Source: Macrostomum lignano
Taxonomy: Eukaryota
DNA length: 41,312 bases
Assembly (NCBI GenBank): GCA_002269645.1
Contig: NIVC01004586.1
Coordinates: 1-41,312, forward strand
Direction of reading: 5' to 3'
Part shown: in pieces, positions 1,221 through 41,312 of the stretch
Position numbering within the stretch: the first letter of the stretch is position 1
How the letters are laid out: each line of letters starts with the position of its first letter
Translations under genes and position numbers: made by a program
The notes under the pieces: model-generated
The model's database searches: none
What the model was told of the DNA's origin: nothing
What the model saw: the letters and a program-made list of their open reading frames with translations, nothing else

Positions 1221-2097
1221 CTAAACTGGCAATAAATCTTCCAGACAGGACATCACAGACAGGACATCACAGGCGTGACTCGCCAGCATCGAGGCCCACA
1301 GTGTCACCTCGCCATTCACCGTGAAATCGTCGCCTTGTGACTGGTCGCCTTCACGGTCTTTAGACGAGCACAAACCAGCAAGCCAAGCGTCACTCGATGG
1401 TCGACAGCCTTCATGGCTACTACTAGCAGTAGCATCAGCAGCATTCGCTGATTGTTTAACAATTAGTTTAGAAGCCAGCTCGGGAACTGTGCCAGCTGAG
1501 TTGGGCAGCAAATTCAGCTCTTCAATAACCATCCAGATGTCCCACTTAGCAACTAAAGAAGCCGTGACTAAATCCGATCGGACAGAATCGCCAAAGTAGG
1601 CAATCTTTCTGGATTGAGTTTTATCATCACATTGTCCAAGAAATTTCAATTCAAATTCTTCCGCACAACCGCTGATGTAAGCTTTACCCCGACCGAATGG
1701 AAGGCGTTCGAAGCTTTCGTAGCTGCTGTAGTAACTAGCGAGCTTGAATAATACGATTTGGACTTTTCATAAAAAAGTTCGGCTTCCCAGCCTCCAACAG
1801 GCAGGCGTCGAATAAATCCGGCCAGTCCTGACCCAGAATGTGCTCAAGATGTCTGGCAGCGAACTGAGCCTCAGAGGATGATAATAAAAAGACATAAATG
1901 CCGCGTTGGCGAAGCTGTTTGAGCAGCACTCGAACTCCGGAGGTCACCGGGCACAGGTAAGCGCTGGGATTAGCTAATACATATTTAAAATAAGCGCCAT
2001 CATCTGAGTAGACGTGAAGCAAAGCTGAGTAGCAATCCTGCCAAAGGCTGCTGCAGTCAGTCAGTGGGGTGGTTCGATTCTCTTCTGCCAAGTCCAC
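1221..2097 (-). CDS. NT5DC1: NT5DC1-type HAD 5'-nucleotidase, exon 2, with an apparent +1 frameshift at about 1738-1770
   Basis: Acceptor caacag|GTG GAC at 2098/2097. Contains LLSSS (motif II), GKPNFF (motif III Lys) and, in the shifted frame, YISGCAEEF, IAYFGDSVRSD (motif IV), WDIWMVIEEL and LWASMLAS. These are colinear with human NT5DC1 as recalled (KPGFF, YSQGNA, VVYFGDSMHSD, WETVLILEEL). Confidence 0.88.
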
Positions 2098-2152
2098 CTG
2101 TTGATGAAGCCAACTTGCTTTTAGTAGAATATCAGCACGTATATGTAGCATC

Positions 2153-2185
2153 ATACTGTACTGCACTGTACTGTACTGTACTGCA
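2153..2185. repeat. Short (ACTGT)n microsatellite in the NT5DC1 intron
   Basis: actgtactgcactgtactgtactgtactgca. Confidence 0.8.
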
Positions 2186-2287
2186 ACCCACCTGGCCATT
2201 TTCATTTTTTTGTGCTCACAAAGCCCCAAATGAATGTGGCTGCGCAACCAGAGGTGGTCCTGGAGCCCCCCTCCTTCCCCAACGCAC

Positions 2288-2716
2288 CAATTTAGCGAAT
2301 ATCAAACTGCCAGGCAAGTCGTAGTGAGTATCCTGAAATCGATAGCGACCATCTCGTTCGTGTCGATAGCCGCTATTGAGAACGGCTTGAGCAAACGGCG
2401 GCCGACCGTCTGGCGGATAAGCCAATTTAGCGTCAAACTGTTTGCTGCCGTGACAAACTCTCAATGCTGCACCTGTGGGCGACATCAAAAGCAGATTGCC
2501 GCCTATTTTGTCTAAAATAGCGGCCCTACTCATTAAGCCGCACTCAACTGGCGATGACCAGTCAAGACTGCGCAGATGATTGGGATAGCCGCGATGCTTA
2601 ACTAAATAGTCTGCCAATTCAACGTAAGCTAGACTGACCAGATTGCGCAACTGATAACGGCCCAGCGTGAGATCGATGTCAAAACCGACTGCGTCGTAGT
2701 CAAACAGACGCTCCAT
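2288..2716 (-). CDS. NT5DC1: NT5DC1-type HAD 5'-nucleotidase, exon 1
   Basis: ATG at 2716. DAVGFDIDLTLGRY is HAD motif I (DxDxT). GNLLLM, RVCHGSK and HYDLPGSLIFAKL match the NT5DC1 pattern. Phase-0 donor TTG|GTGCGT at 2287; the 190-bp intron joins AKL|VD in frame. Confidence 0.92.
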
Positions 2717-2844
2717 ATTTATTTGGTGTTGTCTGACTAACCGACTAAACTGACGGAATCGGTGCTGAAAATAATAATAATAAATCGGAGTGCTAGTTGG
2801 TATCGAGATGAGATGAATATTTGAAATTTGTCATGATTCATGAC

Positions 2845-3622
2845 TTAGACTCTTAAGTGTTGGAATCATTAGTCTTAGTCTTAGTCTTAAATTCTTATTC
2901 GCAGACTCTTATTATTAGACTCTCAGTCTTAGACCCTTAGTCTTAGACCCAGTCTTATTTGTGTTTCAACAAACTTTCATCAGTCTTAGTCTAAGATTCT
3001 TAGTCTTAGACTCTTAGTCTTAGATTATTAGTCTTAGACTCTTAGTCTTAGATTCTTAGTCTTAGACTCTTAGTCTTAGATTCTTAGTCTTAGACTCTTA
3101 GTCTTACATTCTTAGTCTTATACCCTTAGTCTAAGATTCTTAGTCTTCGATTATTAGTCTTAGATTATTAGTCTTAGATTATTAGTCTTAGATTATTAGT
3201 CTTAGATTATTAGTCTTAGATTCTTAGTCTAAGATTCTTAGTCTTAGATTCTTAGTCTTAGACTCTTAGTCTTACATTCTTAGTCTTATACCCTTAGTCT
3301 AAGATTCTTAGTCTTCGATTATTAGTCTTAGATTATTAGTCTTAGATTATTAGTCTTAGATTATTAGTCTTAGATTCTTAGTCTTAGATTCTTAGTCTAA
3401 GATTCTTAGTCATAGATTCTTAGTCTTAGACTCTTAGTCTAAGATTCTTAGTCTTAGATTCTTAGTCTTAGACTCTTAGTCTTAGATTATTAGTCTCAGA
3501 CTCTTAGTCTTAGATTATTAGTCTTAGATTATTAGTCTTAGATTATTAGTCTTAGATTATTAGTCTTAGATTCTTAGTCTTAGATTCTTAGTCTTATACC
3601 CTTAGTCTTAGATTCTTAGTCT
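2845..3622. repeat. 14-bp minisatellite (TTAGTCTTAGATTC/ATTA and variants) between the divergent NT5DC1 and ZNRF3-like starts
   Basis: Directly visible tandem units built from two related 7-mers. Confidence 0.95.
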
Positions 3623-4621: not shown

Positions 4622-6440
4622 AACTTGACAATTGTCAGTTAGTCTGTAAGATACCTGACCAAGAGTTGACAATTGTCAGTTAGTCTGTAAGATACCTGAC
4701 CAAGAGTTGACAATTGTCAGTTAGTCTGTAAGATATCTGACCAACAGTTGAAAATTGTCAGTTAGTCTGTAAGATACCTGACCAAGAGTTGACAATTGTC
4801 AGTTAGTCTGTAAGATATCTGACCAACAGTTGAAAATTGTCAGTTAGTCTGTAAGATATCTGACCAACAGTTGAAAATTGTCAGTTAGTCTGTAAGATAT
4901 CTGACCAACAGTTGAAAATTGTCAGTTAGTCTGTAAGATACCTGACCAAGAGTTGACAATTGTCAGTTAGTCGGTAAGATATCTGACCAACAGTTGACAA
5001 TTGTCAGTTAGTCGGTAAGATATCTGACCAACAGTTGACAATTGTCAGTTAGTCTGTAAGATACCTGACCAAGAGTTGACAATTGTCAGTTAGTCGGTAA
5101 GATATCTGACAAACAGTTGAAAATTGTCAGTTAGTCTGTAAGATATCTGACCAACAGTTGACAATTGTCAGTTAGTCGGTAAGATATCTGACAAACAGTT
5201 GAAAATTGTCAGTTAGTCTGTAAGATACCTGTCCAAGAGTTGACAATTGTCAGTTAGTCTGTAAGATACCTGACCAAGAGTTAACAATTGTCAGTTCGTC
5301 TGTAAGATACCTGACCAAGAGTTGACAATTGTCAGTTAGTCTGTAAGATATCTGACCAACAGTTGACAATTGTCAGTTAGTCGGTAAGATATCTGACCAA
5401 CAGTTGACAATTGTCAGTTAGTCGGTAAGATACCTGTCCAAGAGTTGACAATTGTCAGTTAGTCTGTAAGATACCTGACCAAGAGTTAACAATTGTCAGT
5501 TCGTCTGTAAGATACCTGACCAAGAGTTGACAATTGTCAGTTAGTCTGTAAGATACCTGACCAACAGTTGACGATTGTCAGTTAGTCTGTAAGATATCTG
5601 ACCAACAGTTGACAATTGTCAGTTAGTCGGTAAGATATCTGACAAACAGTTGAAAATTGTCAGTTAGTCTGTAAGATACCTGACCAAGAGTTAACAATTG
5701 TCAGTTCGTCTGTAAGATATCTGACCAACAGTTGACAATTGTCAGTTAGTCGGTAAGATACCTGACCAAGAGTTAACAATTGTCAGTTCGTCTGTAAGAT
5801 ATCTGACCAACAGTTGACAATTGTCAGTTAGTCGGTAAGATATCTGACAAACAGTTGAAAATTGTCAGTTAGTCTGTAAGATACCTGACCAAGAGTTGAC
5901 GATTGTCAGTTAGTCTGTAAGATATCTGACCAAGAGTTGACAATTGTCAGTTAGTCGGTAAGATATCTGACAAACAGTTGAAAATTGTCAGTTAGTCTGT
6001 AAGATACCTGACCAAGAGTTGACAATTGTCAGTTAGTCGGTAAGATATCTGACAAACAGTTGAAACTTGTCAGTTAGTCTGTAAGATACCTGACCAAGAG
6101 TTAACAATTGTCAGTTCGTCTGTAAGATATCTGACCAACAGTTGACAATTGTCAGTTAGTCTGTAAGATATCTGACCAACAGTTGACAATTGTCAGTTAG
6201 TCTGTAAGATATCTGACCAACAGTTGACAATTGTCAGTTAGTCTGTAAGATATCTTACCAACAGTTTACAATTGTCAGTTAGTCTGTAAGATATCTGACA
6301 AACAGTTGAAAATTGTCAGTTAGTCTGTAAGATACCTGACCAAGAGTTGACAATTGTCAGTTAGTCTGTAAGATACCTGACCAAGAGTTAACAATTGTCA
6401 GTTCGTCTGTAAGATATCTGACCAACAGTTGACAATCATC
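4622..6440. repeat. 41-bp satellite (GTTGACAATTGTCAGTTAGTCTGTAAGATACCTGACCAAGA), about 44 copies, in intron 1 of the ZNRF3-like gene
   Basis: Period measured from TTGAC at 4625 and 4666. Head-to-tail units with no unique spacers. Confidence 0.97.
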
Positions 6441-7394
6441 AGTTAAATTGTATTTGTAAGATAATAATTTATCGGGCACTGAGCTGACATGCTCACTTGT
6501 TAAAGTTGTTAGTATGTATCGAAATCAATAAAACACTGCAGAGGAGTGGCAGAAAGTCAGTTAATAATGCCTTGTGCTAACGATAGTAGGGAATAGAGCA
6601 ATATATAATGAATTGAACAGAACAATGGGTTTTGGAAAAGGAAAAATCAGATAGAATTTAATGGCATTGACGAAAATTCCCCTAAAAATTCTAAAAAGCC
6701 CCTATTAACTATCCTATAAGTCACTAATCAGTCACATTTATACCAAACCAAACCTGAAGTCTAACTGGGAAGAGATTTAAGGTAAAAAAATCAATACAAC
6801 AAAGGAGAATATTTCCAACCGGATCGACACCTGATACCTGAAAAGCAGCTTCCTATGAGGCAATGATTCTTTTAATAAGTGCTAGATTGATTGGATATGC
6901 AGTAAAGCATGCTATGCAGGATGCACAAGCTAGGAGTATAGAAAATCCAAGTACAATAAGTATCTTAAGCGTTGTTATCCACACAAATCGCTAAGATCGT
7001 TTCTGTTTACCAAAACTAGCATTGTGAAATATTCCATCTGTTTTTTTTCAGCTATTTCGGTATCAATAAATAAACCTTGGAACAAACTTTCAATAAATCA
7101 TCTTAAGGCTACTAGAACGGCGACTGTTCCTCAAACAGCAGCAGTGATAAACAGTTTTATAATTTTTATTAAAAAATTTTAATCAAACTAGGCAGCCGGT
7201 GACAAAGCAGGAAACGGGGGTAAGTTTTTATAGGAAATTAAAGACGGAAATTTGAATTACGAATCAAATTTTTGTAGCAAAGCAACAGACCCATGGGTTT
7301 CAGTGCTTCGTGTAGCAGGGTCGGTGATAGAGACAAGGCACGTGACGAGTAGGTAGGATCGACTTATGCACTATATAGCGAAAACAAGTATTGC

Positions 7395-7885
7395 TTTTGT
7401 CAGCCTAACTGAGAATAAAGCCATCCAAAGTGAGAATCCTGCCTACGCTGACTGCGAAGGGCCTGGCTGCGTGCAGCCTTAGTCTATGGGCCATAGACAA
7501 TAAAGGACAAGCAAAGTGATAAAAAGCCATCCAATGTGAGAATCGATTGGTCTATGCGTCGTATTGTTTTATTTTTATACCTTCTGAGCCATATGACTAG
7601 CCAATAGCTTGAACGGAATAACGGAAACAGGAACACACTGGATAATGTCTTTTTAAAACTTTGCTTGTCCTTTATAGTCTATGGCTCATAGACTAGGCTG
7701 GACGCAGCTAGGCCCTTCGTATTCAGCGTAGGCAGGATTCTCACATTGGATGGCTTTTTATCACTTTGCTTATCCTTTATAGTCTATGGCCCATAGACTA
7801 AGGCTGCACGCAGCCAGGCCCTTCGCAGTCAGCGTAGGCAGGATTCTCACTTTGGATGGCTTTATTCTCAGTTAGGCTGACAAAA
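7395..7885. mobile_element. Foldback/MITE-like element with 150-bp inverted arms (7395-7544 and 7736-7885) and an extra internal partial copy
   Basis: The arms are reverse complements with about 2 mismatches. Internal hairpin AGTCTATGG-N-CCATAGAC(T/A). 7659-7735 is a further diverged tandem copy of the right arm. Confidence 0.8.
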
Positions 7886-14004: not shown

Positions 14005-15195
14005 AGATACAGTGAGACACACATGAGATACAGGTGACACACACGAGATACAGGTGACACACACAGGAGATACAGGTGACACACACGAGATACAGGTGAC
14101 ACACACACAGGAGATACAGGTGATACACACACAGGAGATACAGGTGACACACACGAGATACAGGTGACACACACACAGGAGATACAGGTGATACACACAC
14201 AGGAGATACAGATGACACACACACAGGAGATACAGGTGACACACACACAGGAGATACAGGTGATACACACACAGGAGATACAGGTGACACACACAGGAGA
14301 TACAGGTGACACACACACAGGAGATACAGGTGATACACACGAGATACAGGTGACACACACACAGGAGATACAGGTGATACACACACAGGAGATACAGGTG
14401 ACACACACACAGGAGATACAGGTGACACACACACAGGAGATACAGGTGACACACACACAGGAGATACAGGTGACACACACACAGGAGATACAGGTGATAC
14501 ACACACAGGAGATACAGGTGACACACACAGGAGATACAGGTGACACACACACAGGAGATACAGGTGATACACACACAGGAGATACAGGTGACACACACAG
14601 GAGATACAGGTGACACACACACAGGAGATACAGGTGATACACACACAGGAGATACAGGTGACACACACACAGGAGATACAGGTGACACACACACAGGAGA
14701 TACAGGTGATACACACACAGGAGATACAGGTGACACACACACAGGAGATACAGGTGACACACACACAGGAGATACAGGTGACACACACACAGGAGATACA
14801 GGTGATACACACACAGGAGATACAGGTGACACACACAGGAGATACAGGTGACACACACACAGGAGATACAGGTGATACACACACAGGAGATATAATGACA
14901 CACACAGGACACACACAGACACACACAGGAGATATAATGACACACACAGGAGATACAGGTGACACACACACAGGAGATACAGGTGACACACACACAGGAG
15001 ATACAGGTGATACACACACAGGAGATATAATGACACACACAGGACACACACAGACACACACAGGAGATATAATGACACACACAGGAGATACAGGTGACAC
15101 ACACACAGGAGATACACACAGGAGATACAGGTGACACACACACAGGAGATACAGGTGACACACACAAGAGATACAGCTGTGACACAGGTGACACA
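14005..15195. repeat. 18-22-bp minisatellite (ACACACAC)AGGAGATACAGGTG with variable CA tract
   Basis: Visible tandem units. ORFs 13828-15249 and 14164-15325 are repeat translations. Confidence 0.96.
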
Positions 15196-16364: not shown

Positions 16365-17863
16365 TCAAGGTCTGGTGGACAGCGGCACAATGGGCCTCGG
16401 GGGCGGCCTAGCGGCCAATTGCCGGTCACTGTTGCATTGGACACCGCTAGCGGCATTGCCAACAGCGGCCTCGCTAACTACCCCGTTTAACTCTGTGTCC
16501 AAATATTCCAAGCACTCTAATCTAGTATCGTCTATTCGCCTGATATTGTTGAGGCGATTAGTTGCCATGGCAACCATAGCTTCGGCGGCCTCGGCTTCGG
16601 CTCGGCGACGCTTATCAACGCATGAAGGCAAACTTTGAGAAGCTTCAATGTCGGAATGACTACGTTTTCTGCTGCTACTAGAAGCAACGGTGCTAGACTG
16701 TTGCTGCGATTCCTGATGACACTGGAAATCCACAGCGCTGTTATAAGCTGCCTGCAAAGCTCTAGCCAGCTGTTGATAGGCATTAGCCAACGGCTCCGGG
16801 ACAGTGAATTTCCTATCCGACATTGTCGTGTCAAAGACATCGAAATTGTCAATAACTGGACTTGCGGAGCAATCGCAGGAATTCAAATAACTTTCAGCTA
16901 TCACTGGCGGATCTAAAGTCCTTGTTTCTTGATCGGAGGAGTCTTTGTTAAGATCGTCAATAGTTAACACGTCAACAACTTCGAGACAGTCAAAGTCTAG
17001 ACTATCTGCATCGCTATTATTGTCGTCAGAATGCTTGTCTGACTGTTCAGCAATCTGTTGAAGCTGCTGATGCTGTTGCTGATGCGGATGCAGCTCAGAC
17101 AATGATGAGGTCGCAGGAGTAGCCGGTCCAAAATGCTGACTACTAATAGTAGGATTAGACATCGGATTATCCGAGCTAGACAATAAACTTAATGGAGCTT
17201 CGCCCAGGTCGTCGCCATTCGGCAGGTCGGCCGCACCGCTGGAAAAGTCCGAGCCCTGATCGAATTTAAACAGCGAATCAGCCGCAGCGGCAGCCGCCTC
17301 GGTGCCAACCTCCGAGCTGGCATCCGCCGTTAACAGATAATCTTCTATCGACAATTCTTCCCTAACACCGCCATCGCCTTCGTCTTCGCTAATAGGCTCA
17401 AATACCGGAGTCTGCAATGCGGAGCTTCTTTCCTCATCAATTTTATTGACCTCCCTCTCTACCCTAGCTTCTTGCCGATGGTGATTGTTAACCGTGGACG
17501 CCTGCTGCGAATGACTGGCATGACAGAAGCCGTAGAACAGGCTTGGGTACAGGCTGTCATAATGAGTTACAGCATCAGCATCCGCCTGACCTGGCGATGA
17601 CAACAGCTGGCCCAGATCCACACTGAGCGCATCGCCAAGAAGGTCTGGTGAGTATAAAGTTGGCGGCTGTGACAGTAACTGTTGCTGCTGCTGTTGTTGT
17701 GTCTGCTGCTGATGCTCCTGAGATGAAAATTCCATACCGTCAAAGTAGCGAGCCAACGCTAATCTAACGTAATCGCGCATTACGCCTACCCGATGCGGGG
17801 AGCTGCGCACCGGACAGCTGCGGGCCCAGCGGCGACTGCGGCGCCAAAGAGCTCCAACTGCTT
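16365..17863 (-). CDS. Large exon of a putative nuclear/transcription factor: end of the NRF1-like domain, acidic and poly-Q low-complexity region, basic NLS-like motifs; may extend to 16159 via a frameshift
   Basis: Acceptor ttccccttatcccacag| at 17864, phase 1. Open for about 500 codons: (E)AVGALWRRSRRWARSCPVRSSPHRVGVMRDYVRLALARYFD..., poly-Q, RKRSHS, KRRR. Confidence 0.8.
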
Positions 17864-18734: not shown

Positions 18735-19730
18735 TGGCCTACACACTGGACAGGAGTGACACACAGGGTGAAGCACTGGACAGGAGTGACACACAGGGTG
18801 AAGCACTGGACAGGAGTGACACACAGGGTAAAAGCACTGGACAGGAGTGACACACAGGGTGAAGCACTGGACAGGAGTGACACACAGGGTGAAGCACTGG
18901 ACAGGAGTGACACACAGGGTGAAGCACTGGACAGGAGTGACACACAGGGTAAGCACTGACAGGAGTGACACACAGGGTGAAGCACTGGACAGGAGTGACA
19001 CACAGGGTGAAGCACTGGACAGGAGTGACACACAGGGTGAAAGCACTGGACAGGAGTGACACACAGGGTAAAATCACTGATCAGGAGTGACCCACAGGGT
19101 AAAATCACTGACAGGAGTGACACACAGGGTGAAAGCACTGGACAGGAGTGACACACAGGGTAAAAGCACTGGACAGGAGTGACACACAATGTGAAAGCAC
19201 TGGACAGGAGTGACACACAGGGTGAAAGCACTGGACAGGAGTGACCCACAGGGTGAAAGCACTGGACAGGAGTGACACACAGGGTAAAAGCACTGGACAG
19301 GAGTGACACACAGTGTGAAAGCACTGGACAGGAGTGACACACAGGGTGAAAGCACTGGACAGGAGTGACCCACAGGGTGAAAGCACTGGACAGGAGTGAC
19401 ACACAGGGTAAAATCACTGATCAGGAGTGACCCACAGGGTAAAATCACTGATCAGGAGTGACCCACAGGGTGAAAGCACTGGACAGGAGTGACCCACAGG
19501 GTGAAATCACTGATCAGGAGTGACCCACAGGGTAAAATCACTGATCAGGAGTGACCCACAGGGTGAAAGCACTGGACAGGAGTGACCCACAGGGTAAAAT
19601 CACTGATCAGGAGTGACCCACAGGGTAAAATCACTAGACAGGAGTGACTCACAGTGTAAAAATACTGAATAGGAGTGACGAGTGACTCACAGGGGAAAAC
19701 CACTGCTCAGGAGTGACCCACAGGGTAAGA
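18735..19730. repeat. 30-31-bp minisatellite (CACACAGGGTGAAGCACTGGACAGGAGTGA)
   Basis: Period 30 at 18758/18788, with 31-bp variants to the right. ORFs 18546-19448 are repeat translations. Confidence 0.96.
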
Positions 19731-20384
19731 GCACAGGATACCTTTCATAACCTCTGTATGTTTATTCAGAAAAAAACCGACCAAAGGATAAAACTAAAAG
19801 TGCGGTGCTCTTAATAAAATACTTGCACATGTAGAATACAGATTGCAAGGTGCAAAGCTTTGCTAACTACTTGTGCACATAATAACGTTATGTAATACAT
19901 CTGCATGCTAGTATGCTGTCATATCATTGCAAAAAATGTTCTGCAATAAATTACAACACTTATCATGTAGGTACAACGTAATAATATAATAATAATAACT
20001 GCTTACTGCCAAAGGTTTAGAATCCAAATATGAGTCTGCAGTGCTGGAATATAATATTCAACTTATATTACATTACTTTTAATATATGGAGAATATTTAT
20101 AGGTACACACATAGGTACACACAGGGGTAACAAGTGTACTAGTAATTAAACAATGCATTTTATCATACACTTTTTTGTGTGTTTATCCAGATCCGCCATC
20201 TACTTTCTCCGGTTCTATGATGCCTACCTAATTATTTCTTGCTAGCTATTCAGCTAGCTAACAGGCGCGCGTGTAACTAAGCCAAATAGTGCAATATCAA
20301 GTAAATAGACGATACCTACTGACTGAATGGCATTAGTTAAGGGGCAGGGGCGTGATACAGACCTGACTGACTGGAGATTATACT

Positions 20385-20945
20385 CAGCTAAGAGACTAGA
20401 TTTTAAACAGCTATGAGACTAAACTATTGTTAGCTATGAGACTAGATAATCAGCGATGAGACTAGATTATAATCAACTATGATACTAGACTATAATCAGC
20501 TATGAGACTAGATTATAATCAGCTATGAGACTAGATTATAATCAGCTATGAGACTAGATTATAATCAGCTATGAGACTAGATTATAAACAGCTATGAGAC
20601 TAGATTATAATCAGCTATGAGACTAGATTATAATCAGCTATGAGACTAGATTATAAACAGCTATGAGACTAGATTATAATCAGCTATGAGACTAGATTTT
20701 AAACAGCTATGAGACTAGATTATAATCAGCTGAGACTAGATTATAAACAGCTATGAGGCTAGATTATAATCAACTATGAGACTAGATTATAAACAGCTAT
20801 GAGACTAGATTATAATCAGCTATGAGACTAGATTATAAACAGCTATGAGACTAGATTACAATCAGCTATGAGGCTAGATTATAATCAACTATGAGACTAG
20901 ATTACAATCAGCTATGAGGCTAGATTATAATCAACTATGAGACTA
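20385..20945. repeat. 23-bp minisatellite (CTAGATTATAATCAGCTATGAGA)
   Basis: CTAG at 20462, 20485 and 20508 gives period 23. Confidence 0.95.
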
Positions 20946-21024
20946 GATCACCGTCTTTTATTACGGTTAGGACAGCAAAACAGTTTTAGTAATACTACTG
21001 AAATTACTGTAAAATCTTACTCAC

Positions 21025-22234: not shown

Positions 22235-23090
22235 AAAATCTCAAATCTGTGAGTTTCAGGTATCAAAATATCACCACTGCGAGATTCAGGTATCATAGTC
22301 TCACCTCTGCGAGATTCAGGTATCAAAGTCTCACCTCTTCGAGATTCAGGTATCAAAGTCTCACCTCTGCGAGACTCAGGTATCAAAGTCTCACCTCTGC
22401 GAGATTCAGGTATCAAAGTCTCACCTCTGCGAGACTCAGGTATCATAGTCTCACCTCTGCGAGATTCAGGTATCAAAATCTCACTTCTGCGAGACTCATG
22501 TATCAAAGTCTCACCTCTGCGAGACTCAGGTATCATAGTCTCACCTCTGCGAGATTCAGGTATCAAAGTCTCACCTCTGCCAGACTCAGGTATCATAGTC
22601 TCACCTCTGCGAGATTCAGGTATCAAAATCTCACTTCTGCGAGATTCAGGTATCGAAATCTCACCACTGCGAGACTCAGGTATCAAAGTCTCACCTCTGC
22701 GAGATTCAGGTATCGAAATCTCACCACTGCGAGACTCAGGTATCAAAGTCTCACCTCTGCGAGATTCAGGTATCAAAATCTCACCTCTTCGAGATTCAGG
22801 TATCAAAGTCTCACTTCTGTGAGACTCAGGTAACAAAGTCTCACTTCTGCGAGATTCAGGTATCAAAGTCTCACCTCTGCGAGATTCAGGTATCAAAGTC
22901 TCACCTCTGCGAGATTCAGGTATCGAAATCTCAGCACTGCGAGATTCAGGTATCGAAATCTCACTTCTGCGACATTTAGACATCAAAATCTTACCCTTCA
23001 AAGATTTGGGGATCAAAATCTCACCCCTTAGAGATTTGGGTAGTAAATTCTTACCCCTTATATATTCTGGTATCAAAATCTTAACCCATT
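22235..23090. repeat. 30-bp minisatellite (GAGATTCAGGTATCAAAGTCTCACCTCTGC), degenerating at both ends
   Basis: Direct. ORFs 22210..23076 and 22225..22833 are 10-aa repeat translations. Confidence 0.95.
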
Positions 23091-23589: not shown

Positions 23590-24290
23590 TGACAGTGAAT
23601 ATCCTGACAGTGAATATCTTGAGTGAATATACTTACAGTGAATTAGCCTGACAGTGAGTATCCTGACAGTGAATTAGCCTGACAGTGAGTATCCTGACAG
23701 TGAATTAGCCTGACAGTGAGTATCCTGACAGTGAATTAGCCTGACAGTGAGTATCCTGCAGTGAATTAGCCTGAGAGTGAATAGCCTGACAGTGAATATC
23801 TTGAGTGAATATCCTGACAGTAAATATCCTGACAGTGAATATCCTGACAGTGAATATTCTGACAGTGAATATCCTGAGTGAATATCCTGATTGAATATCC
23901 TGACAGTGAATATCTTGAGTGAATATCCTTACAGTGAATTAGCCTGACAGTGAATATCTTGAGTGAATATCCTTACAGTTAATAGCCTGACAGTTAATAG
24001 CTTGACAGTGAATAGCCTGACAGTGAATATCCTGACAGTAAATATCCTGACAGTGAATATCCTGACAGTGAATATTCTGACAGTGAATATCCTGAGTGAA
24101 TATCCTGATTGAATATCCTGACAGTGAATATCTTGAGTGAATATCCTTACAGTGAATTAGCCTGACAGTGAATATCTTGAGTGAATATCCTTACAGTTAA
24201 TAGCCTGACAGTTAATAGCTTGACAGTGAATAGCCTGACAGTGAATAGCCTGACAGTGAATAGCCTGACAGTGAATATCCTGACAGCCAA
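23590..24290. repeat. 11-16-bp minisatellite (CTGACAGTGAATATC) with a 218-bp higher-order duplication
   Basis: The diagnostic variant TAAATATCC occurs at 23821 and 24039, and the variant order is repeated. Confidence 0.93.
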
Positions 24291-30736: not shown

Positions 30737-31333
30737 TTGTCAACTCTTTTCTACAATGGCTATCCTAAGAACTTGGTGATGAAAATTGTCAACTCTTTTC
30801 TCAATGACAAACTGACTGAACCTAATCGGATGAAAGTTCGTGATTCCACCTCTGAATGTCCCTTGATCACTTTGCCTTACTTTGGTGTTTGTTCTATAGA
30901 GTTTAAAAAGAAGTTAGAAAAGCTGCTCCGTAAAGACTTAAACACTCAAATCCGTGTTGTGTTTCGCACCGAAAAGATTGCTAAGTTTGTCTGCAAGTTG
31001 AAATCCAGTGTTCCACGTCCTCTCGCGGCTGGTGTCGTGTATAAATTTGTTTGCTCTGAGGACCAGAGCATCTCCTACATAGGAAAAACTAAACGACACT
31101 TATACACGAGGGTCAGAGAGCACTGGCTAAAAAACTCTGCTATTAACGAACACCTGCTAACCTGCAATTCTTGTTGTGAGGCTGAACCACACGAAATGAT
31201 TAAGGCTATTGATTTTTGTAATAGAGATCACATGCTCTGCCTATTAGAAGCCCTGTACATTAAGACCAAACAGCCCACGTTAAATAACCAACTTGCGATG
31301 GGTGGGGCTAGCCGTCAACTCAGAATTTTTTAG
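30737..31333 (+). CDS. PLE ORF remnant: RT thumb/linker and GIY-YIG endonuclease
   Basis: NGYPKNLV, ITLPYFG, GVVYKFVC..SYIGKTKRHLYTRVREH, SAINEHL, LEALYIKTKQPTLNNQ are PLE GIY-YIG hallmarks. Intact to stop; the N-terminus is created by the truncation junction. Confidence 0.93.
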   Translation: MSTLFYNGYPKNLVMKIVNSFLNDKLTEPNRMKVRDSTSECPLITLPYFGVCSIEFKKKLEKLLRKDLNTQIRVVFRTEKIAKFVCKLKSSVPRPLAAGVVYKFVCSEDQSISYIGKTKRHLYTRVREHWLKNSAINEHLLTCNSCCEAEPHEMIKAIDFCNRDHMLCLLEALYIKTKQPTLNNQLAMGGASRQLRIF

Positions 31334-31560: not shown

Positions 31561-33682
31561 AACTCAAATAATACTTCATGTTGATATTTACCTTTATTTA
31601 CTAACTACTAACTAACTATTTTTCGAGTAGCTAACTATAATTCTAAGAATCAAATTCGATATAAGGAAGCGATACGCTTCAATAAGCCGCGTAGATAGTC
31701 CAACGAAAGCACAACTGGGTGAATTCATTTTATTTCAAGCTTATCTGTGAATATTGATCAAAGTCAGGAAACTTTTCTCTAAACTTGAACAAGCATGATA
31801 AGTTGTTGATTCTTTTTTACTTTTACTCGTCCTACCATCTAACCGAAGCTGCCTTGAGTAGCTAAGTGTTCTGGTCTAAGCTTGGCTATAGGCCCTTATT
31901 ATATCATCATTCATCAGCATTGATGTATGTCTTTTGTCTGTAGGTGTCGGATTCTTTTCAATATTACATTCAGCATGTGTAAACTCTGAATCATAATTAT
32001 GATTCACTACTGTCATTATACTACATGTAGCTGACGTAACCCGAGCTGCATGAGAATACCTGCAAATCCCTGGGCTTTGGCGCTGAAAAGTACAGCCACC
32101 AGGCCTCGTCCCCTAGACTTTGTCCATGTCTGGATGGTGCGGTAGCTGACGACGTTGCGCGGCCAACAAGATACCTAATTTGGACAGCGGACCCCATAGT
32201 TTTTTGAAAGTACACGTCAGAAGCCTGGCCGCCACCAGTCACCTGTGCAGGAGTACATATACACCCGCGCCGTAAAAACACTAACGATGAGACGTACGGG
32301 ACTCCCGGTCAAGCAGACTGTGAGGAATATTAGAAAATGGTGAGCAATGGGGGGTGGAGACGACCTGACTAAGGATACTCAAAGACAGCGCAAGGAAGGG
32401 AGGAAAATAACTTAACAGACACGGCTGACGGGCAGGGCTGCTTGGGCACAGTAGTCGTCAGATGGTCACGGTGGCCGCTGGATGATTCAGGAAGTCTCGG
32501 AATGGGGTGGGCGTCAGCCAGACTGGTGGGCAACAGATAGGGAAGAGGAAGAAGGACAGTTAGCGAATGTCTATTGGGGAGCTCCTGAGGATCTAGGAGC
32601 AATAATGAAAGTATTCGGAGGAAATTAAATTAGTCTTAGGGGTGATCGCCGCGGTTCGGGTACGGAGTCCGGTCTCGCGGGAAAACAAACTAAACAGCAC
32701 AATTGGGGCGGAAACAGTAAAACGAGTACAGGTCCCGATTGAAGGAAAGTGAAGAAAGAACGGTTTAATGCTCAGGACTCAAAACGGGCTCCTACCTCTG
32801 TTACTAAAAAACCCTGATGACGTCTCGCTGTGATTGGATGAGAAATTGGGGTGGGGCACAGCGGCGAAAATGATTTATGATAGGGGATTACTTAACAGGT
32901 GGGAAAAGCTTGGGGACATAGGGGGTCAGAGTTGCGCATTGGATTTGATGATACGTGAGAATTAAGCTAAGCAAGCTAGGCGTGCATATTACTGCGGCGC
33001 GGGCTATCGAGAAAACGTTGTTAAATGTATTGAATATATTTCTTCGAGTAAAAAGATATTATAGCATTACGAGTATTAGGATGCATAGCACATGTAACAG
33101 AGGCAAAAGGGTGCAGCAAGCAAAGAGATGAGACAGTACAGCGAGGGGAGAGACACAGATGCAATAAATAGGGAGGATAAAGGGATTTACATGGAGGTGA
33201 AGGGGAGTGATAGAATAATAGTGATAGTGGACAGTGCTAGGAGGCAGGAGAAGCCGCACTCGACCCAAGGGTCACAAGTCACATATCTTGTGTACTAGAG
33301 AGAACAAGAGCCCAGGGGGGGGGCAAGGCAGCCGTCTAATTGACGAGGCACTCAGACGCCAAGGCCGTGGTTACAGCACTTACTTTATAAATCATATTTC
33401 CTAGATACGAATGAAAAACCCTTTTCACCATAGCCGTCTAAATCAACTCAGTGAGGTTTGCGAAAATTGAAAAATGCTTTTTTCGTTTTTGCAAAATCGA
33501 CAGCTTTGAGTCAAAAAGGTTTCTCGATTGATAATGGATTTTAATCAGTATTCACCCAGCCGTGTGGACCAAAACGACAGGCGAAAAGACAATTTCAATT
33601 TAAAATGCAATATAAAAAATCCATTAAGAATCGAACGGGCTCTGCAAATTTCTCGAATTCTGATCTGATTCAAGCTTTGGCC

Positions 33683-34112
33683 ATGATGGCGCTCCATAGA
33701 ATTTTCCCGATCCTGAGCAGCCTGATCTGCGTCACTCTTTGTCGGCAGTTTCAGACCACGGATCTCGGCTTCTTTGTTGACTACACGAATGGTGTGAGAG
33801 ATATATGCAAACTGAAAAACCTGGGCCTGACACGGGTTGGCCGTTACACCATACGGCCTGACGGTACTGATGTAAGTTACGTTTTCGTGTCGAGTTGGCA
33901 AATGACTCATGAGCTGTGCGGCACCATCTGCTCACTTGGCGGCTTCAAGTTTATGACGCTTCAAGGCGAAAACTGGTGCAGCTGCGGCAACTCCTACGGC
34001 TCGCAGAGCGCGGCTCCTGACTGGGAATGCTGGGACACCTGCGCCGGTAACAGGACTCAAAACTGTGGTGGTCCTTACCGAAATCGAGTGCTAAAATTGA
34101 CATATGCTGGCA
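33683..34112 (+). CDS. Secreted WSC-PAN protein, exon 1 (signal peptide and WSC domain)
   Basis: MMALHRIFPILSSLICVTLC signal peptide. GFFVD..RD..MTHELCGTIC..WCSCGNSYG..EC..TCAGNRTQNCGGPYRNRV is a WSC domain. Phase-1 donor GGCA|GTAAGT at 34113. Confidence 0.88.
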
Positions 34113-34475
34113 GTAAGTTTACAGGAATTTATTTCTGGGTAGCTACCGAGCATAATCCTAACAGTAGGATTAGTAGTTTCTTAGAAATAAGCATGTCGTA
34201 TACTCTCTATAGAAATCGGATTTTCTCATGACCAATTTTGTCTATGGTGAAAGCCCATTCACCGCTCTAGAGCGTACTAAACAAGGCGTACTAGGTACTA
34301 AGCGTACTAAGCACTAAACAACTAAACAAGTTGTTCATGGTGATTACAGGAAGCTATAGTTAAAGGCTAAGAGATTGAGCTTTAGTGTACAGGCAGAGCT
34401 CCGATGATATGACGAGTTGAAAATCAGACTTGCAACTATTTATCAATTATTTTCAAGCCCTTTCAAGTAGGTAGA

Positions 34476-35410: not shown

Positions 35411-35892
35411 ATTTAAGAGAAGATAGGAGATTAGAGAGAGAGCGCTGAGAAGAATCACAAACCTTGAGCAAGCCAGTTTGCAACTCGCATGATGAAATTT
35501 CAAATTTTAGCGGGCCGGAGTTTGCCGACCCCTGTATCTGCCTACCTTTACTTACGACGTATTGAGATTACTTTATTCGGACAAATTAAATATACGCTAG
35601 CAAAGAAAGAGCAGTACTGTGAAATCGCACTTGACGATGTCTGCACTCGGCTGTCTTCCTCGTGCATGTAATTGTTCTTTAAAATGGAAATATGACAAAC
35701 TACTAAAAATCATACACGCTTTGTGAAATGTTATAACTCAAGCTACATGTACAAGCGGTTCAGTTTATTTTACTGATAAATTATATACCTCTGACCCTTC
35801 AGCACTGTATAAATTAACAAGTGAGACTATACCAATTCCTATATTATTTTGACACTCCTGATGGAGTAAAACTCCATTTGCCACTCCTCTAG

Positions 35893-37230
35893 ATGGGTTG
35901 TCACTCCTCCCGATGGGTTGTCACTCCTCCCGATGGGTTGTCACTCCTCCCGATGGGTTGTCACTCCTCCCGATGGGTTGTCACTCCTCCCGATGGGTTG
36001 TCACTCCTCCCGATGGGTTGTCTCTCCTCCCGATGGGTTGTCACTCCTCCCGATGGGTTGTCACTCCTCCCGATGGGTTGTCACTCCTCCCGATGGGTTG
36101 TCACTCCTCCCGATGGGTTGTCACTCCTCCCGATGGGTTGTCACTCCTCCCGATGGGTTGTCACTCCTCCCGATGGGTTGTCACTCCTCCCGATGGGTTG
36201 TCACTCCTCCCGATGGGTTGTCACTCCTCCCGATGGGTTGTCACTCCTCCCGATGGGTTGTCACTCCTCCCGATGGGTTGTCACTCCTCCCGATGGGTTA
36301 TCGCTCCTCCCGATGGGTTATCGTTCCTCCCGATGGGTTGTCACTCCTCCCGATGGGTTGTCACTCCTCCCGATGGGTTGTCACTCCTCCCGATGGGTTG
36401 TCACTCCTCCCGATGGGTTGTCACTCCTCCCGATGGGTTGTCACTCCTCCCGATGGGTTATCGCTCCTCCCGATGGGTTATCGTTCCTCCCGATGGGTTG
36501 TCACTCTTCCCGATGGGTTGTCTCTCCTCCCGATGGGTTGTCACTCCTCCCGATGGGTTGTCTCTCCTCCCGATGGGTTGTCACTCCTCCCGATGGGTTG
36601 TCACTCCTCCCGATGGGTTATCGCTCCTCCCGATGGGTTGTCACTCCTCCCGATGGGTTGTCACTCCTCCCGATGGGTTATCGCTCCTCCCGATGGGTTA
36701 TCGTTCCTCCCGATGGGTTGTCACTCTTCCCGATGGGTTGTCACTCCTCCCGATGGGTTATCGCTCCTCCCGATGGGTTATCGCTCCTCCCGATGGGTTA
36801 TCGTTCCTCCCGATGGGTTATCGCTCCTCCCGATGGGTTATCGCTCCTCCCAATGGGTTATCGCTCCTCCCGATGGGTTATCGCTCCTCCCGATGGGTTA
36901 TCGCTCCTCCCGATGGGTTATCGTTCCTCCCGATGGGTTATCGTTCCTCCTGATGGGTTGTCACTCCTCCCGATGGGTTATCGCTCCTCCCGATGGGTTA
37001 TCATTCCTCCCGATGGGTTGTCACTCCTCCCGATGGGTTGTCACTCCTACCGATGGGTTATCGTTCCTCCCGGTGGTTTATCGCTCCTCCCGGTGGGTTA
37101 TCGCTCCTCCGGTGGGTTATCGCTCCTCCCGGTGGGTTATCGCTCCTCCCGGTGGGTTATCGCTCCTCCCGGTGGTTTATCGCTCCTCCCGATGGGCTAT
37201 CGCTCCTTTCGATGGGTTTTTACTCCTCCT
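35893..37230. repeat. 20-bp minisatellite (GATGGGTTGTCACTCCTCCC, changing to GATGGGTTATCGCTCCTCCC), about 67 copies
   Basis: Direct. ORFs 35893-37428 are repeat translations. Confidence 0.97.
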
Positions 37231-37649
37231 GATGGGTTGCCACTTCTTAAATCGGGTAGTTGCACTTTTTTGTCATATGGTAAATCCTTAAGATTAAGCA
37301 ATACGGCTACAAATGCTATCAAACTTCATCGTTCGTACAGAAAAAAATGGACCAATCCATTGAGTTGGCGCGTGTGTATTTTGCTTCCTGCTGCTGTTAT
37401 GAACAGGAAAAATGACATTCTGCAGTGAATGCAGCTGAGCAAAATAGAAAAATGAAAAAACTCAGCAACTTCATTTCGAAAATTTTTACAAGGAAGAAAA
37501 AATCGGATTGAAAAAATGTCTCGACACTTCAGGTTTCTGACAGTTAAATGAGCGTCGTCTGTGTGTGTTTTACATCGCCAACAAATTGCGCTGCGGCTGT
37601 ACAGTTTGGTGAAAAATGTGTACATGGTAGATGGCAGCGTCAGTCATCA

Positions 37650-38081
37650 TCAGCAGTAGTCGCCGCAGCGGCTGTAGCCGCAGCTGTACCTGTCGTGGCA
37701 TAGTTGCGCAATCTGTTGATCGTCTCGCTGATCCATCAGCTCGCAGCAGCGTCGTTTCCATTCGCGCGCCTGCTCCCGCCATCTGATGGCTTCCGCTTTC
37801 CACTGGCGCACCAGTTCGCGCGTTCTCAGCGCCTCTGTGCGCCAGCCGATTAGGGCGCCTCTCGCTTTTGCTAATTCGGCCTGCACTATGCCGGTCTGTT
37901 GGCGCCAATGGTTGGCGCTGCGAGTCATGTCGCAGAGCTGCTTCTGCAGGCGCAGGGCCTCGGAGCGCCACTTTTCGCGGCTTCGCTTCCAACGGTGGAT
38001 GCAGTCTTTCCAGTTCACGCTGACCAGATCCTGTTGCTGCTGCTGCTGTTGCCAGTCAGCGCTGCAAGCGTTATTGAACAT
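37650..38081 (-). CDS. Trp-heptad coiled-coil protein of unknown family
   Basis: ATG at 38081, non-repetitive DNA, poly-Q. Nine Trp at positions 10, 24, 31, 38, 59, 80, 94, 101 and 108, all 3 mod 7. A pyrimidine tract and AG lie just upstream. Confidence 0.72.
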   Translation of the reverse strand: MFNNACSADWQQQQQQQDLVSVNWKDCIHRWKRSREKWRSEALRLQKQLCDMTRSANHWRQQTGIVQAELAKARGALIGWRTEALRTRELVRQWKAEAIRWREQAREWKRRCCELMDQRDDQQIAQLCHDRYSCGYSRCGDYC

Positions 38082-38761
38082 TTCCGGCGAAGGCTTAAGG
38101 CGGGCTGCTCCTTGTGCAAAAAAAACTGAGTCAAATTGCCGAATTCACTTCTAGATGGCTGCTTTCTCTTTTAGTGGCTACACAGACTCAAGCAGCCGTA
38201 ACCATAGGCCTATATTTGTGCGCCTACTTTTGACCATAGACAAAATAAACAGTGAGGCTCGGTAGACCATAAAACATTATATAGTATTTTTGTTGAGTAC
38301 TTTTTTTGAAAAGTTCAAGTTCAAACCATAGACAATGAATGCAATAAAGATATATTTATGCATCTATCCACTACTTCACAATATGAAAATTTGCGACAGC
38401 AGTTTTGCCGAAATTACACTATACAGCTGTTAGTAGCTTTAAACCGGGGGAAATATCAGAGTTAGAGGTTAGGTAGAGACTTTGTGGATTTGTATAAAAG
38501 TAGAAAGCAGGAAAAGTTACGTACATTGAGCTATGTACATTCATCTCGTGCTCATCAAATATGACTTGCAAATTTTTATCATGTGCGTACGCGTTTTTTT
38601 TAGAGGCAGGGGGGTTGTGTGCACCCTGGCGCACTTTAAGCGACATAGGCACACAACCGGCGAGAGGCATTACTGCCCATTCCGCCGACTCCCCTGAGCA
38701 GGCATACAAGCGCGCGGATACGTACGCAGGCACACACTCACACAGGAGTGTACAGCGGCCC

Positions 38762-38953
38762 TAACTTTATATTATCGTTAGGCATGTACACTTCAATGCG
38801 CCTTGGGGGGTTGGCTCTCAAGGCCGTTAATTGCACGAGCAGAGCCAAGCCGAGATTCCAATTCAGCCCCAAATTAATGTGACTGCACTTGGAATCGAGC
38901 CTGGGTCGCTGGCACACCAGAGCAGCTGCGCTACCGCTGGGCTACGGCCCCCC
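38762..38953 (-). mobile_element. tRNA-headed SINE-like element of a different family from the CORE-like copies
   Basis: The minus strand begins GGGGGCCGTAGCCCAGCGGTAGCGC; A box at 38944-38934, B box GGCTCGATTCC at 38901-38891. No tRNA 3' acceptor strand; ends in an AT-rich tail. Confidence 0.65.
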
Positions 38954-39929
38954 TGCGTACGCGTTTATTTTAGTGTACATCTCACAGCCAAACCGCCCGT
39001 TTTATTGTCATATGCTCATAATTCAATCATTAATCATTAATTACAACCATTAATTAACCATAATCATTAATCAAGTTTTAATTTTTTTCAGCACAAAAAT
39101 TGTTATTGCTTTTGATAGGAGACAGATCCAGTGTTCATCTTTTGATATGTTGTGCCTTTCTTATTGCTCTATCGATATTTATAAAGCTTTGTGTTCAGAA
39201 ATAGTTTTAAAGGCAGGTTTCACCGGAAAAATACACTACGGAGATAGGAATTTCACGATTTTCAACACTAAAACAGTGATAGGGTCTCTTAACAGTGTCA
39301 GAGAAAGTCCTAATCACACTATTTTGTGCCTCACATGCTGCTCTAACGACGCATTAATCGCGATTTTTCATGGTAAAATGAAAGGTTTGTGCTTTGATTC
39401 ATGCAATTGATGGGTTTCGACCTTCGGGCTCCTTGTTAGGGAAGCCTTCGGGCCTCAGGCTCAGAAATAAATCAATTAGAGACCTGGCCCCCCACTCCTG
39501 TCAGATGGTCAGCCCCATGGTAGCTTGATCGTGTGGCGAGCAGTCTAGGTCCTATAGCTAAGAGAGGGACAGCGAGAGACGAGCAGGGAGAATTTTGAAA
39601 GTAGAAATTAGCTAATCCGCAGATCAACTAACTTGCTGCCACCAGCCCGTGCTCACCACACCGGGACTCTCGAAATCGGGCTTCCGACTAGAAGGGGCTT
39701 TGCACTTACCTGCCAACTAGTGTCTTTTTGCTGTCAATCTCGAAGTCATAGCCGATGATAAGGGACACTGCTGGGACTAGATCGCGTTGGCCATGCAGGT
39801 ACAGAGGGGACTTGTGCAGGGGATTCTTGCGGTGGCGAGTCTATGGGGTAGCTACATGTACTATTACATTGCTAAATACGAAGATATGTACTTTTGGCCT
39901 TCAACGCGCCAACTAGCCTCTCATAGCGC

Positions 39930-40095
39930 TGATGATAGACTAACTCGAACTTCAGAGACCGCATGATTCATTTACCCGAGCCGCTTGGCTACCCTAGAGT
40001 GCACAAAGTACATCTCTGGCGCCGATTCTGCACTTTTGGCAGTTTTGCTCACTGATTTGTTAGATTGGTCGACTGAGAACTGCCTTGCCATTGGT
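39930..40095 (+). mobile_element. Possible highly decayed LINE RT fragment
   Basis: FIY..CTKY..LLTDLLDWSTENCLAI loosely resembles LQxDLDxLxxWSxxNxLxLN downstream of YADD. YADD itself is absent. Confidence 0.3.
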
Positions 40096-40683
40096 CCACT
40101 GTGACCGGCGCCTACTAGCTTAGCTACTCATCTGAGCCATCGACGAACAAAGAAATAAAGCCGACAAAGATAACTGTTAGATTTAACCTTCTCCTTAGTT
40201 CACTTCACACTTTAGATTGAATTGGAGTCTTAGACTACTAGCAGTATTATTGAATGATTCCTGCCTCAGCAACAGCACTACTGAACAAAATGAGCAAAAG
40301 TGTGCGCCTAATTCAGCTACTGCGACAGGGGACAGAAAAGGGATCACCCAATCAAGCAAGTCTAGGTAGCCTCTCACCCAACCAATCAGAAACTCAACAG
40401 CCGGAGACCAGGTATTCCACAGTGGCCGAATCGGCTCGATGCTCTGCAGCTGTAGACTCGGGATGATGCTGTCACAATCTTCGCTGTTAGCTAGCAGGTG
40501 ATGCTCTTAACTGGATGTTCGCTGCTGTCGACCGGGGGACTCGTCCTTGATGATGATGGGGGAAGTTGCAATCCGGGGATCAAGAAACGACGGTCGTGCT
40601 CCGGGAACCAGAAGTTGCGCGCTGGGCCCGAGCCAAAGTAAGAAGAAGGGGTTGTTGTTGCGTCCGAGCGGGCCAAAAACTCC

Positions 40684-40816
40684 GGTTTAAATAGCCGCCA
40701 ACTGGACCGCAGTTTGTTATAACGGAACACGTCGATTCTGATTGGCTGAGCCGTTTTGTTAAAATGAGCGCCGAATTTTCTGATTGGCTAAGCTCGTTGC
40801 TACCCAGAATCACGTG
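40684..40816 (-). promoter_or_regulatory. Candidate Pol II promoter: E-box, two CCAAT boxes and a TATA-like box
   Basis: CACGTG at 40811-40816; CTGATTGGCT (AGCCAATCAG on minus) at about 40739 and 40780; TATTTAAA on minus at 40691-40684. A CpG-rich stretch lies downstream on the minus strand. Confidence 0.5.
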
Positions 40817-41312
40817 ACCGAGAGATCCTATCAGTTCCCACAGGTCGTAAAAAGATGACAGGTGCGGCCATAAATCACTCAAAATCGCAACAAAATGATT
40901 TATGACTTTTCGCGTAGGATTGACAGAAATTAATGAAAAAATATACATTAGAAAGCTCTTATTAAATAGAAAGTGAAGATAATGAAGAGAAATTGCTAAT
41001 CGCTAATCCAAGGTACTTTTAGGGGTAAAACGCATAGCTGTCAAAGCTGTCACACGCTTGAGTGAATCCGAACAATAGGCTCTGACCTCATAAATCTTGA
41101 TGGCCTGTCAAAATGATGAGAAAAAAGCTACGCCCGCATCCTCTCAGACCATCTGGCGCCCGCTTCAACACTGAGTGAGGCGCAGGTGGCTGTCAGATCA
41201 GCTTCGAAAGCGATGATTTATGACCAAAAAGCTGCGCCTATGTTATTATGACTACTAGTATGGCCAGACATTATATCTAGTATAGATTCTATGAAATTCG
41301 CAGAAAAAGGAT

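Follow-up and report, generated by a model that had tools for sequence, protein, structure and literature searches.

Macrostomum lignano encodes a family of small proteins with a conserved tryptophan heptad lattice and a predicted coiled-coil fold

A short intronless gene of the flatworm Macrostomum lignano encodes a 143-residue protein, here called P0001, in which tryptophan recurs at a single position of a heptad repeat, and this protein is a member of a duplicated family that is under purifying selection and has been seen so far only in M. lignano. The gene was found in a 41,312-nucleotide stretch of contig NIVC01004586.1 (assembly GCA_002269645.1), referred to below as the window. We are highly confident that P0001 is a genuine gene whose product is a heptad-Trp helix. 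With moderate confidence, the protein is interpreted as a lineage-restricted, cytoplasmic, parallel and homo-oligomeric coiled coil whose core is built of alternating Trp and Ala layers; of this arrangement, the parallel orientation, the self-association and the low oligomer number are what we infer from the residue pattern.

The P0001 reading frame runs on the minus strand from an ATG at 38081 to a TGA stop codon at 37650-37652 (Table 1). Its exact amino acid sequence is present in both NCBI nr and UniRef, starting at the same ATG and ending at the main-frame stop. The GenBank annotation of GCA_002269645.1 (Mlig_3_7) was derived from an RNA-seq-based transcriptome with TransDecoder ORFs, from which transcripts overlapping repeats had been removed (PMC5730564), and this provenance points, indirectly, to transcription of the locus. 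A full-text search and the supplements of four M. lignano papers yielded no expression table naming the gene IDs of the paralogues. A previous sequence-only reading of this DNA had set the lower boundary of the feature at 37640 and had suggested that the real C-terminus may lie in the +1 frame (SETINRL...DDD, stop 37640). That coordinate belongs to the stop of the +1 frame, and the alternative ending is refuted on three counts: the main frame is conserved to about residue 131 (ELMDxKDDQQIAxxC) in the full-length members, the annotated frame is the only one open in all four paralogues, the others being full of stops, and the database protein terminates in the main frame. The predicted product is a basic protein of 17 kDa (pI 9.3) with nine Cys, among them the C6, C27 and C112 that are invariant in the family, and with no Pro within the helix. 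No signal peptide was recognised, the N-terminus of P0001 being polar (MFNNACSADWQQQQQQQ) and devoid of a hydrophobic signal segment. The coding sequences of the paralogues have a GC3 of 0.75-0.87.

Table 1. Position of the P0001 gene, its segments and the tandem arrays in the window
Feature	Position	Strand	Basis or remark
Complete single-exon CDS of the Trp-heptad protein P0001, 143 aa + stop	37650..38081	minus	ORF list; identical nr/UniRef protein
Conserved island: CDS + ~120 nt upstream + ~100 nt downstream	37547..38201	minus	Haplotype-copy comparison
Residues 1-23: variable, predicted disordered, with Q7 run, W10 and invariant C6	38013..38081	minus	pLDDT and paralogue indels
Residues 24-135: one continuous predicted alpha-helix with heptad lattice	37677..38012	minus	AlphaFold2, composition, periodicity
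First WWW block, W24/W31/W38, NWKDCIHRWKRSREKW	37968..38012	minus	Nearly invariant across the family
Second WWW block, W94/W101/W108, WKAEAIRWREQAREW	37758..37802	minus	Stretch most like the cholinesterase WAT motif
Tandem arrays	188-994, 2844-3622, 4625-6445, 14017-15116, 18744-19738, 20375-20948, 22235-23036, 23590-24286		TRF

All nine Trp residues of P0001 (10, 24, 31, 38, 59, 80, 94, 101 and 108) fall at 3 mod 7, as the sequence-only reading had claimed; none of 200,000 random placements brought nine Trp into one class modulo 7 (the analytic value being (1/7)^8 = 1.7e-7), and 18 of 200,000 matched when any period from 3 to 11 was allowed. The lattice that is conserved in the family comprises eight of these residues (24-108), which are spaced by 7, 7, 21, 21, 14, 7 and 7 positions, carry no indel in any paralogue over 85 residues, would arise by chance in one sequence with a probability of about 1e-6 and are reproduced in four lineages. 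W10 is in register only in P0001, being offset by 2 in P0002 and P0007 and absent from P0006, so that the nine-membered register holds for P0001 and its first member stands outside the conserved lattice. The proposed recurrence of W[RK]xEA was also reproduced, with three occurrences in P0001 (at 38, 80 and 94) and six of the looser W[RK]xx[AILVC]. In the partner register (0 mod 7) the residues are I, R, A, L, A, T, L, L, A, V, A, A and C; the sequence-only reading had described the register as mostly small or aliphatic from a list that left out R35, which is invariant in the family. Neither a tandem array (TRF, 37245..41312) nor a direct DNA repeat (37600..38120) was detected, which rules out an internal DNA repeat as the origin of the periodicity and therefore places it at the protein level, as had been argued.

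When the heptad register is anchored with Trp at d and composition is counted over the whole family (60 residues per position), position d contains Trp in 32/60 and Leu in 9/60 cases, and position a contains Ala (22/60) and Leu (11/60) and no Trp at all, with Arg or Lys making up 39/60 of the residues at e and Gln or Glu 29/60 of those at g. In the eight invariant heptads d is Trp, and in the remaining ones it is Leu, Met, Val, Ala or Thr. The hydrophobicity spectrum has peaks at 3.50 (7/2) and 2.33 (7/3) and none at 3.60, the power being 7.4-10.3 at 3.50 versus 0.3-1.2 at 3.60; such a spectrum marks a heptad repeat that supercoils rather than a straight amphipathic helix. The 3.5 periodicity is unbroken, a and d are apolar, and the pattern extends over at least four heptads, as in a putative heptad coiled coil.

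The AlphaFold2 model, obtained for one chain from a three-sequence alignment, predicts one long helix from residue 24 to 135, with a block pLDDT of 93-98 over residues 31-120 and a pLDDT below 50 for residues 1-19, where W10 lies. The non-helical monomer that the sequence-only reading had considered as an outcome was thus not what the model returned. A lone helix with high pLDDT is the AlphaFold2 output for any coiled-coil-like sequence. No matches were obtained when the lone-helix model was compared with the PDB by Foldseek.

The evidence for selection comes from the paralogues. At least four old lineages are present in the M. lignano genome, represented by P0001, P0002, P0007 (with its truncated allele P0003) and P0006 (with the fragment P0004); their proteins are 56-62% identical and their genes lie in unrelated genomic contexts, with neighbours such as arrestin and aldehyde dehydrogenase. 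Across 13 loci the annotation lists six related proteins, with one to four copies per lineage, all of them within syntenic haplotype blocks. Outside the CDS the flanking sequences have nothing in common between paralogues, and within it the indels are confined to the N-terminal segment (residues 1-23). Synonymous sites are near saturation (pS 0.59-0.77 between paralogues), and pairwise dN/dS is 0.13-0.37 among the paralogues and 0.16-0.21 between P0001 and the others; the family is under purifying selection. The P0003 allele differs from P0007 by a GAG to TAG change just past the last Trp heptad and is found on two contigs (L008:5001-5357 and L009:5001-5357, versus L010:3001-3453). Its premature stop removes the C-terminal 32 residues and keeps every Trp, so either the tail is dispensable or this copy is decaying. 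A neighbouring gene for a 145-aa secreted protein was considered as a conserved partner and rejected, because it lies beside P0003/P0007 and neither at the other loci nor in the window.

Within the P0001 lineage the picture is one of near identity. The CDS is present on four contigs of the assembly with zero differences; the copies on L003 and L004 are 99.6-100% identical, and the other two contigs carrying a P0001 copy differ from both by 2-8% in the flanks. Since the four copies lie in syntenic blocks, they are haplotype or homeologue copies and not transposed ones, and the M. lignano assembly is known to hold such redundant copies (PMC5730564). Comparison of the haplotype copies reveals a conserved island, some 650 bp long, with one variable column, versus 3-9% variable columns farther out, and the approximately 40 differences in a 1.35-kb block all lie outside it. 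The island is probably the transcription unit. The silent codon positions within it are frozen too, as are some 220 nt of non-coding flank, which exceeds the prediction from protein-level selection alone; gene conversion or an RNA-level constraint is possible, and with silent sites and UTRs frozen alike, the conservation of the island between haplotype copies could stem from gene conversion and not from selection.

Several sequence elements were observed around the gene. A T8 tract followed by GCACAAG/G at 38112-38127 (minus strand, ~31-46 nt 5' of the ATG) resembles a splice acceptor or SL trans-splice acceptor, and the reading frame is open for a short stretch upstream of the P0001 ATG. The motif GTCTATGG(T/C)(C/T)AAAAGT occurs ~145-160 nt 5' of the start codons of both P0001 (window ~38224-38244, minus strand) and P0006 (L011 ~2841-2860), and within a repeat (window 7645-7863) there is a sequence akin to it, TAGTCTATGGCCCATAGACTAGG; the motif may belong to a promoter or to a short dispersed element. 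Downstream, 400 bp from the gene, lies a 20-bp minisatellite (TTGTCACTCCTCCCGATGGG, 68 copies, 94% matches, 35878-37244) whose length varies among the haplotype copies and in which all three plus-strand frames are open, giving rise to spurious ORFs of 351-511 aa (MGCHSSRWVVTPPDGLSLLP repeats).

Over the whole window (1-41312) tandem repeats are very dense: the 45 TRF rows include arrays 0.6-1.8 kb long with units of 14-41 bp, and these give rise to many artefactual long ORFs. Three ORF pieces at 1221-2716 (minus strand) match the 5'-nucleotidase family PF05761 (E = 5e-14, 4e-13) and probably belong to exons of a gene for a cytosolic 5'-nucleotidase. A 198-aa ORF at 30737-31333 (plus strand) contains a GIY-YIG endonuclease domain (E = 2.4e-7) and may have been left behind by a mobile element, Penelope-like or other, a 208-aa ORF at 33605-34231 (plus strand) contains a WSC carbohydrate-binding domain (E = 5.6e-12), and a 481-aa open frame at 16365-17810 (minus strand), which is GC-rich, rich in Gln, Ser and Asp, apparently disordered and without a Pfam match, probably represents one large exon of a gene yet to be characterised.

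In the mechanism that we propose for P0001, a short disordered head would precede a helix of some 110 residues with an uninterrupted heptad repeat. On a straight helix a seven-residue stripe would wind left-handed by about -20 degrees per heptad, or about 240 degrees between W24 and W108, and because the stripe drifts in this manner its continuous burial would need a left-handed supercoil. Chains would pair in parallel and in register to form a homo-oligomeric coiled coil, in which layers of bulky Trp (d) would alternate with layers of small Ala (a). The mean core volume would approximate that of a leucine zipper, and since the mean side-chain volume of a Trp(d)/Ala(a) pair is near that of Leu, an alternation of big and small layers is plausible without a wide bundle. 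Ion pairs between Glu at g and Arg or Lys at e' would hold the assembly together, according to a pairing rule restated in PMC4619341; with basic residues at e and acidic or amide ones at g, the parallel orientation would be favoured, as an antiparallel one would juxtapose like charges. The invariant C112, at position a, would be placed for cross-linking neighbouring chains. On the other hand, the invariant Arg35, also at a, argues against a tightly closed high-order core, and together with the Thr, Gln and Cys found at core positions it weakens the case for a canonical closed one. A parallel dimer or trimer with Trp at d would be unusual on steric grounds, and we know of no natural precedent. 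The sequence-only reading had compared the protein to engineered tryptophan zippers that form wide bundles; this comparison has been set aside, since Trp occurs only at d, a is mostly Ala or Leu, and a wide high-order bundle does not follow. The cellular role is probably that of a structural or adaptor rod.

Homology searches bear on the first alternative. In an exhaustive HMM search, no relative from outside M. lignano emerged among 1.84 billion representative proteins, and no assignment to a family or to a TE ORF1 was obtained; one further protein, P0005 (E = 2e-5 in the same search), is a Trp-free generic coiled-coil protein and was rejected as compositional. The Pfam scan of P0001 and of all six members gave nothing at threshold, the weak matches being to coiled-coil families and to the cholinesterase WAT domain, and the PDB profile search gave nothing significant, its best matches being the N-terminal region of the T7 tail-fibre protein gp17 (E = 0.66) and designed helical repeats. 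The earlier statement that no natural family could be recognised is thus right at threshold, and it overlooked the WAT domain as the only recurrent, sub-threshold match. In cholinesterases, four parallel WAT helices wrap a polyproline-II PRAD, an assembly mode stated to be found in cholinesterases only (bioRxiv 10.1101/431288, 10.1101/068098).

By analogy, the flatworm protein might form a free-standing, cytoplasmic sheath of parallel helices in a left-handed superhelix, whose Trp-ladder channel would clasp a proline-rich partner in the PPII conformation as WAT does on the PRAD of ColQ or PRiMA; this is considered unlikely, though it is the alternative that survives best. The likeness is recurrent. 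PF08674 (AChE_tetra) is the Pfam family matched by the largest number of members (weakly, in 3/6, best E = 0.0011), P0001 matching it over residues 92-110 (E = 0.24, 11.6 bits, below the 25-bit gathering cut-off), and BLASTP against the WAT chain of 1VZJ aligned E..RQWKAE..RW......WK with 11/21 identities, with a second alignment on the first WWW block. With a local WAT HMM built from three cholinesterases, and shuffles that keep every Trp fixed as the null (2000 each), P0006 scored 17.4 bits and P0001 12.9 bits, values that were reached by 0/2000 and 2/2000 shuffles, respectively, and the first WWW block matched the profile as WK...HRW......W with 6.0 bits. Three Trp at exact heptad spacing on a predicted amphipathic helix, as in WAT, are found twice, at W24/31/38 and at W94/101/108, the heptad roles agree (W at d, K at e, E at g), and hhalign aligned 27 columns with E = 2e-4. 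However, the hhalign probability was 46%, the Pfam scores stay under the cut-off, and the real scores of P0002 and P0007 were reached by 11/2000 and 148/2000 W-fixed shuffles, so that P0007 is indistinguishable from them. The residues four after each Trp, I28, R35 and A42 in the first block and A98, A105 and C112 in the second, are also unlike the F, M and F of 1VZJ, which are conserved at a in WAT. Moreover, P0001 is a stand-alone protein with no cholinesterase catalytic domain, no other Pfam domain and no signal peptide, whereas WAT and PRAD assemble in the secretory pathway; no gene for a proline-rich partner is linked to any paralogue, and so short a motif, in an assembly mode described for cholinesterases only, could be convergent. 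The ORFs of the 20-bp minisatellite (PPDGLSLLPMG...) were considered as a proline-rich partner and rejected, given that all three plus-strand frames are open and there is no sign of coding. The homology of the family with WAT, as read from these alignments, is unproven. More doubtful still is the possibility that the protein represents the first free-standing WAT-type assembly outside cholinesterases, that is, a tryptophan ladder of 16 heptads forming a hollow sheath round a long PPII ligand, or else a natural wide-bore bundle lined by Trp; if true, such a sheath or bundle would be a new natural module for the recognition of proline-rich partners or for rod building.

The second alternative dispenses with self-association and views the protein as a monomeric, basic, Trp- and Arg-rich amphipathic helix whose Trp stripe docks on a membrane interface, a nucleic acid or a cytoskeletal polymer. 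Pairs of Trp and Arg are typical of membrane-interface and nucleic-acid binders, and in this family almost every Trp is directly followed by Arg or Lys, each chain carrying 27-29 Lys+Arg at a pI of 9.1-10.4; the lone helix given by AlphaFold2 would also fit. Yet the hydrophobic face spans just two positions, the period is 3.50 exactly over about 105 residues, with essentially no power at 3.60, a stripe that winds through some 240 degrees from W24 to W108 cannot face one flat surface, and the charge pattern at e and g would be left without a role, all of which makes a monomer improbable. By far the least probable is that the ORF is non-functional, whether as a frame open by chance, as a pseudogene or as a portion of a repeat or TE (for instance an ORF1-type coiled coil): it is small and intronless, adjoins a 1.4-kb minisatellite in an extremely repeat-rich contig, lacks homologues beyond one species and has an allele with a premature stop, but a dN/dS well below 1 between old paralogues, the single conserved open frame, the indel-free Trp lattice, the low copy number in syntenic haplotype blocks, the unique contexts and unrelated flanks of the paralogues, the absence of an RT or transposase adjacent to the gene in the window and the removal of repeat-overlapping transcripts from the annotation all argue against it, and a TE ORF1 was excluded, there being no dispersed copies with shared termini and no adjacent RT.

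The interpretation we prefer is a parallel coiled coil that combines Trp in d with Ala in a; the link of the family with the WAT motif is suggestive but unproven. To our knowledge, the three-Trp WAT peptide of cholinesterases is the only natural heptad-Trp motif, and our literature searches for natural Trp-core coiled coils found nothing relevant. Eight Trp at d, fixed through a silent divergence that has reached saturation, constitute a natural experiment in the periodic packing of a large aromatic residue; a structure would extend the design rules of coiled coils to the Trp(d)/Ala(a) case and would test the WAT/PRAD principle outside cholinesterases. The family further offers a clear case of duplicated, intronless genes that are taxonomically restricted and under purifying selection, in an organism amenable to RNAi and transgenesis, in which function is directly testable.

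Trp is the rarest core residue in natural coiled coils, and each of the known systems with which the family can be compared shares only part of its pattern. The GCN4-like leucine zippers have the same strict heptad phase, the two-residue-wide core, Lys or Arg at e and Glu or Gln at g, and P0001 would, like them, form a continuous helix, here predicted to exceed 100 residues; they differ in that the d positions of the flatworm proteins are dominated by Trp and the a positions by Ala, with an invariant Arg at one a. The engineered Trp-zipper pentamer of Liu et al. 2004 (PDB 1T8Z), which PMC4619341 cites, is reportedly a designed peptide whose Trp residues fill a as well as d and thereby impose a bundle of five helices. 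It shares with the flatworm proteins a heptad repeat with core Trp, whereas in the latter Trp is confined to d, in 8 of about 15 heptads, and faces small residues at a; the PDB profile search gave no match to 1T8Z at E <= 10. Closest is the cholinesterase WAT, likewise a natural amphipathic helix with a seven-residue Trp spacing, in which the first heptad is nearly identical (WKAE-x-x-R-W) with Lys after Trp, W occupies d, K e and E g (WKAE[F/A]xR), and a Cys lies downstream of the last Trp. WAT chains are parallel and form a left-handed supercoil, a likeness that for the flatworm proteins is a predicted one. WAT, with aromatic residues or Met at a, is 40 residues long and appended to the C-terminus of a secreted alpha/beta-hydrolase, whereas the flatworm protein is free-standing, has Ala, Leu or Cys at a, and extends over about 16 heptads that include two WWW blocks together with W59 and W80.
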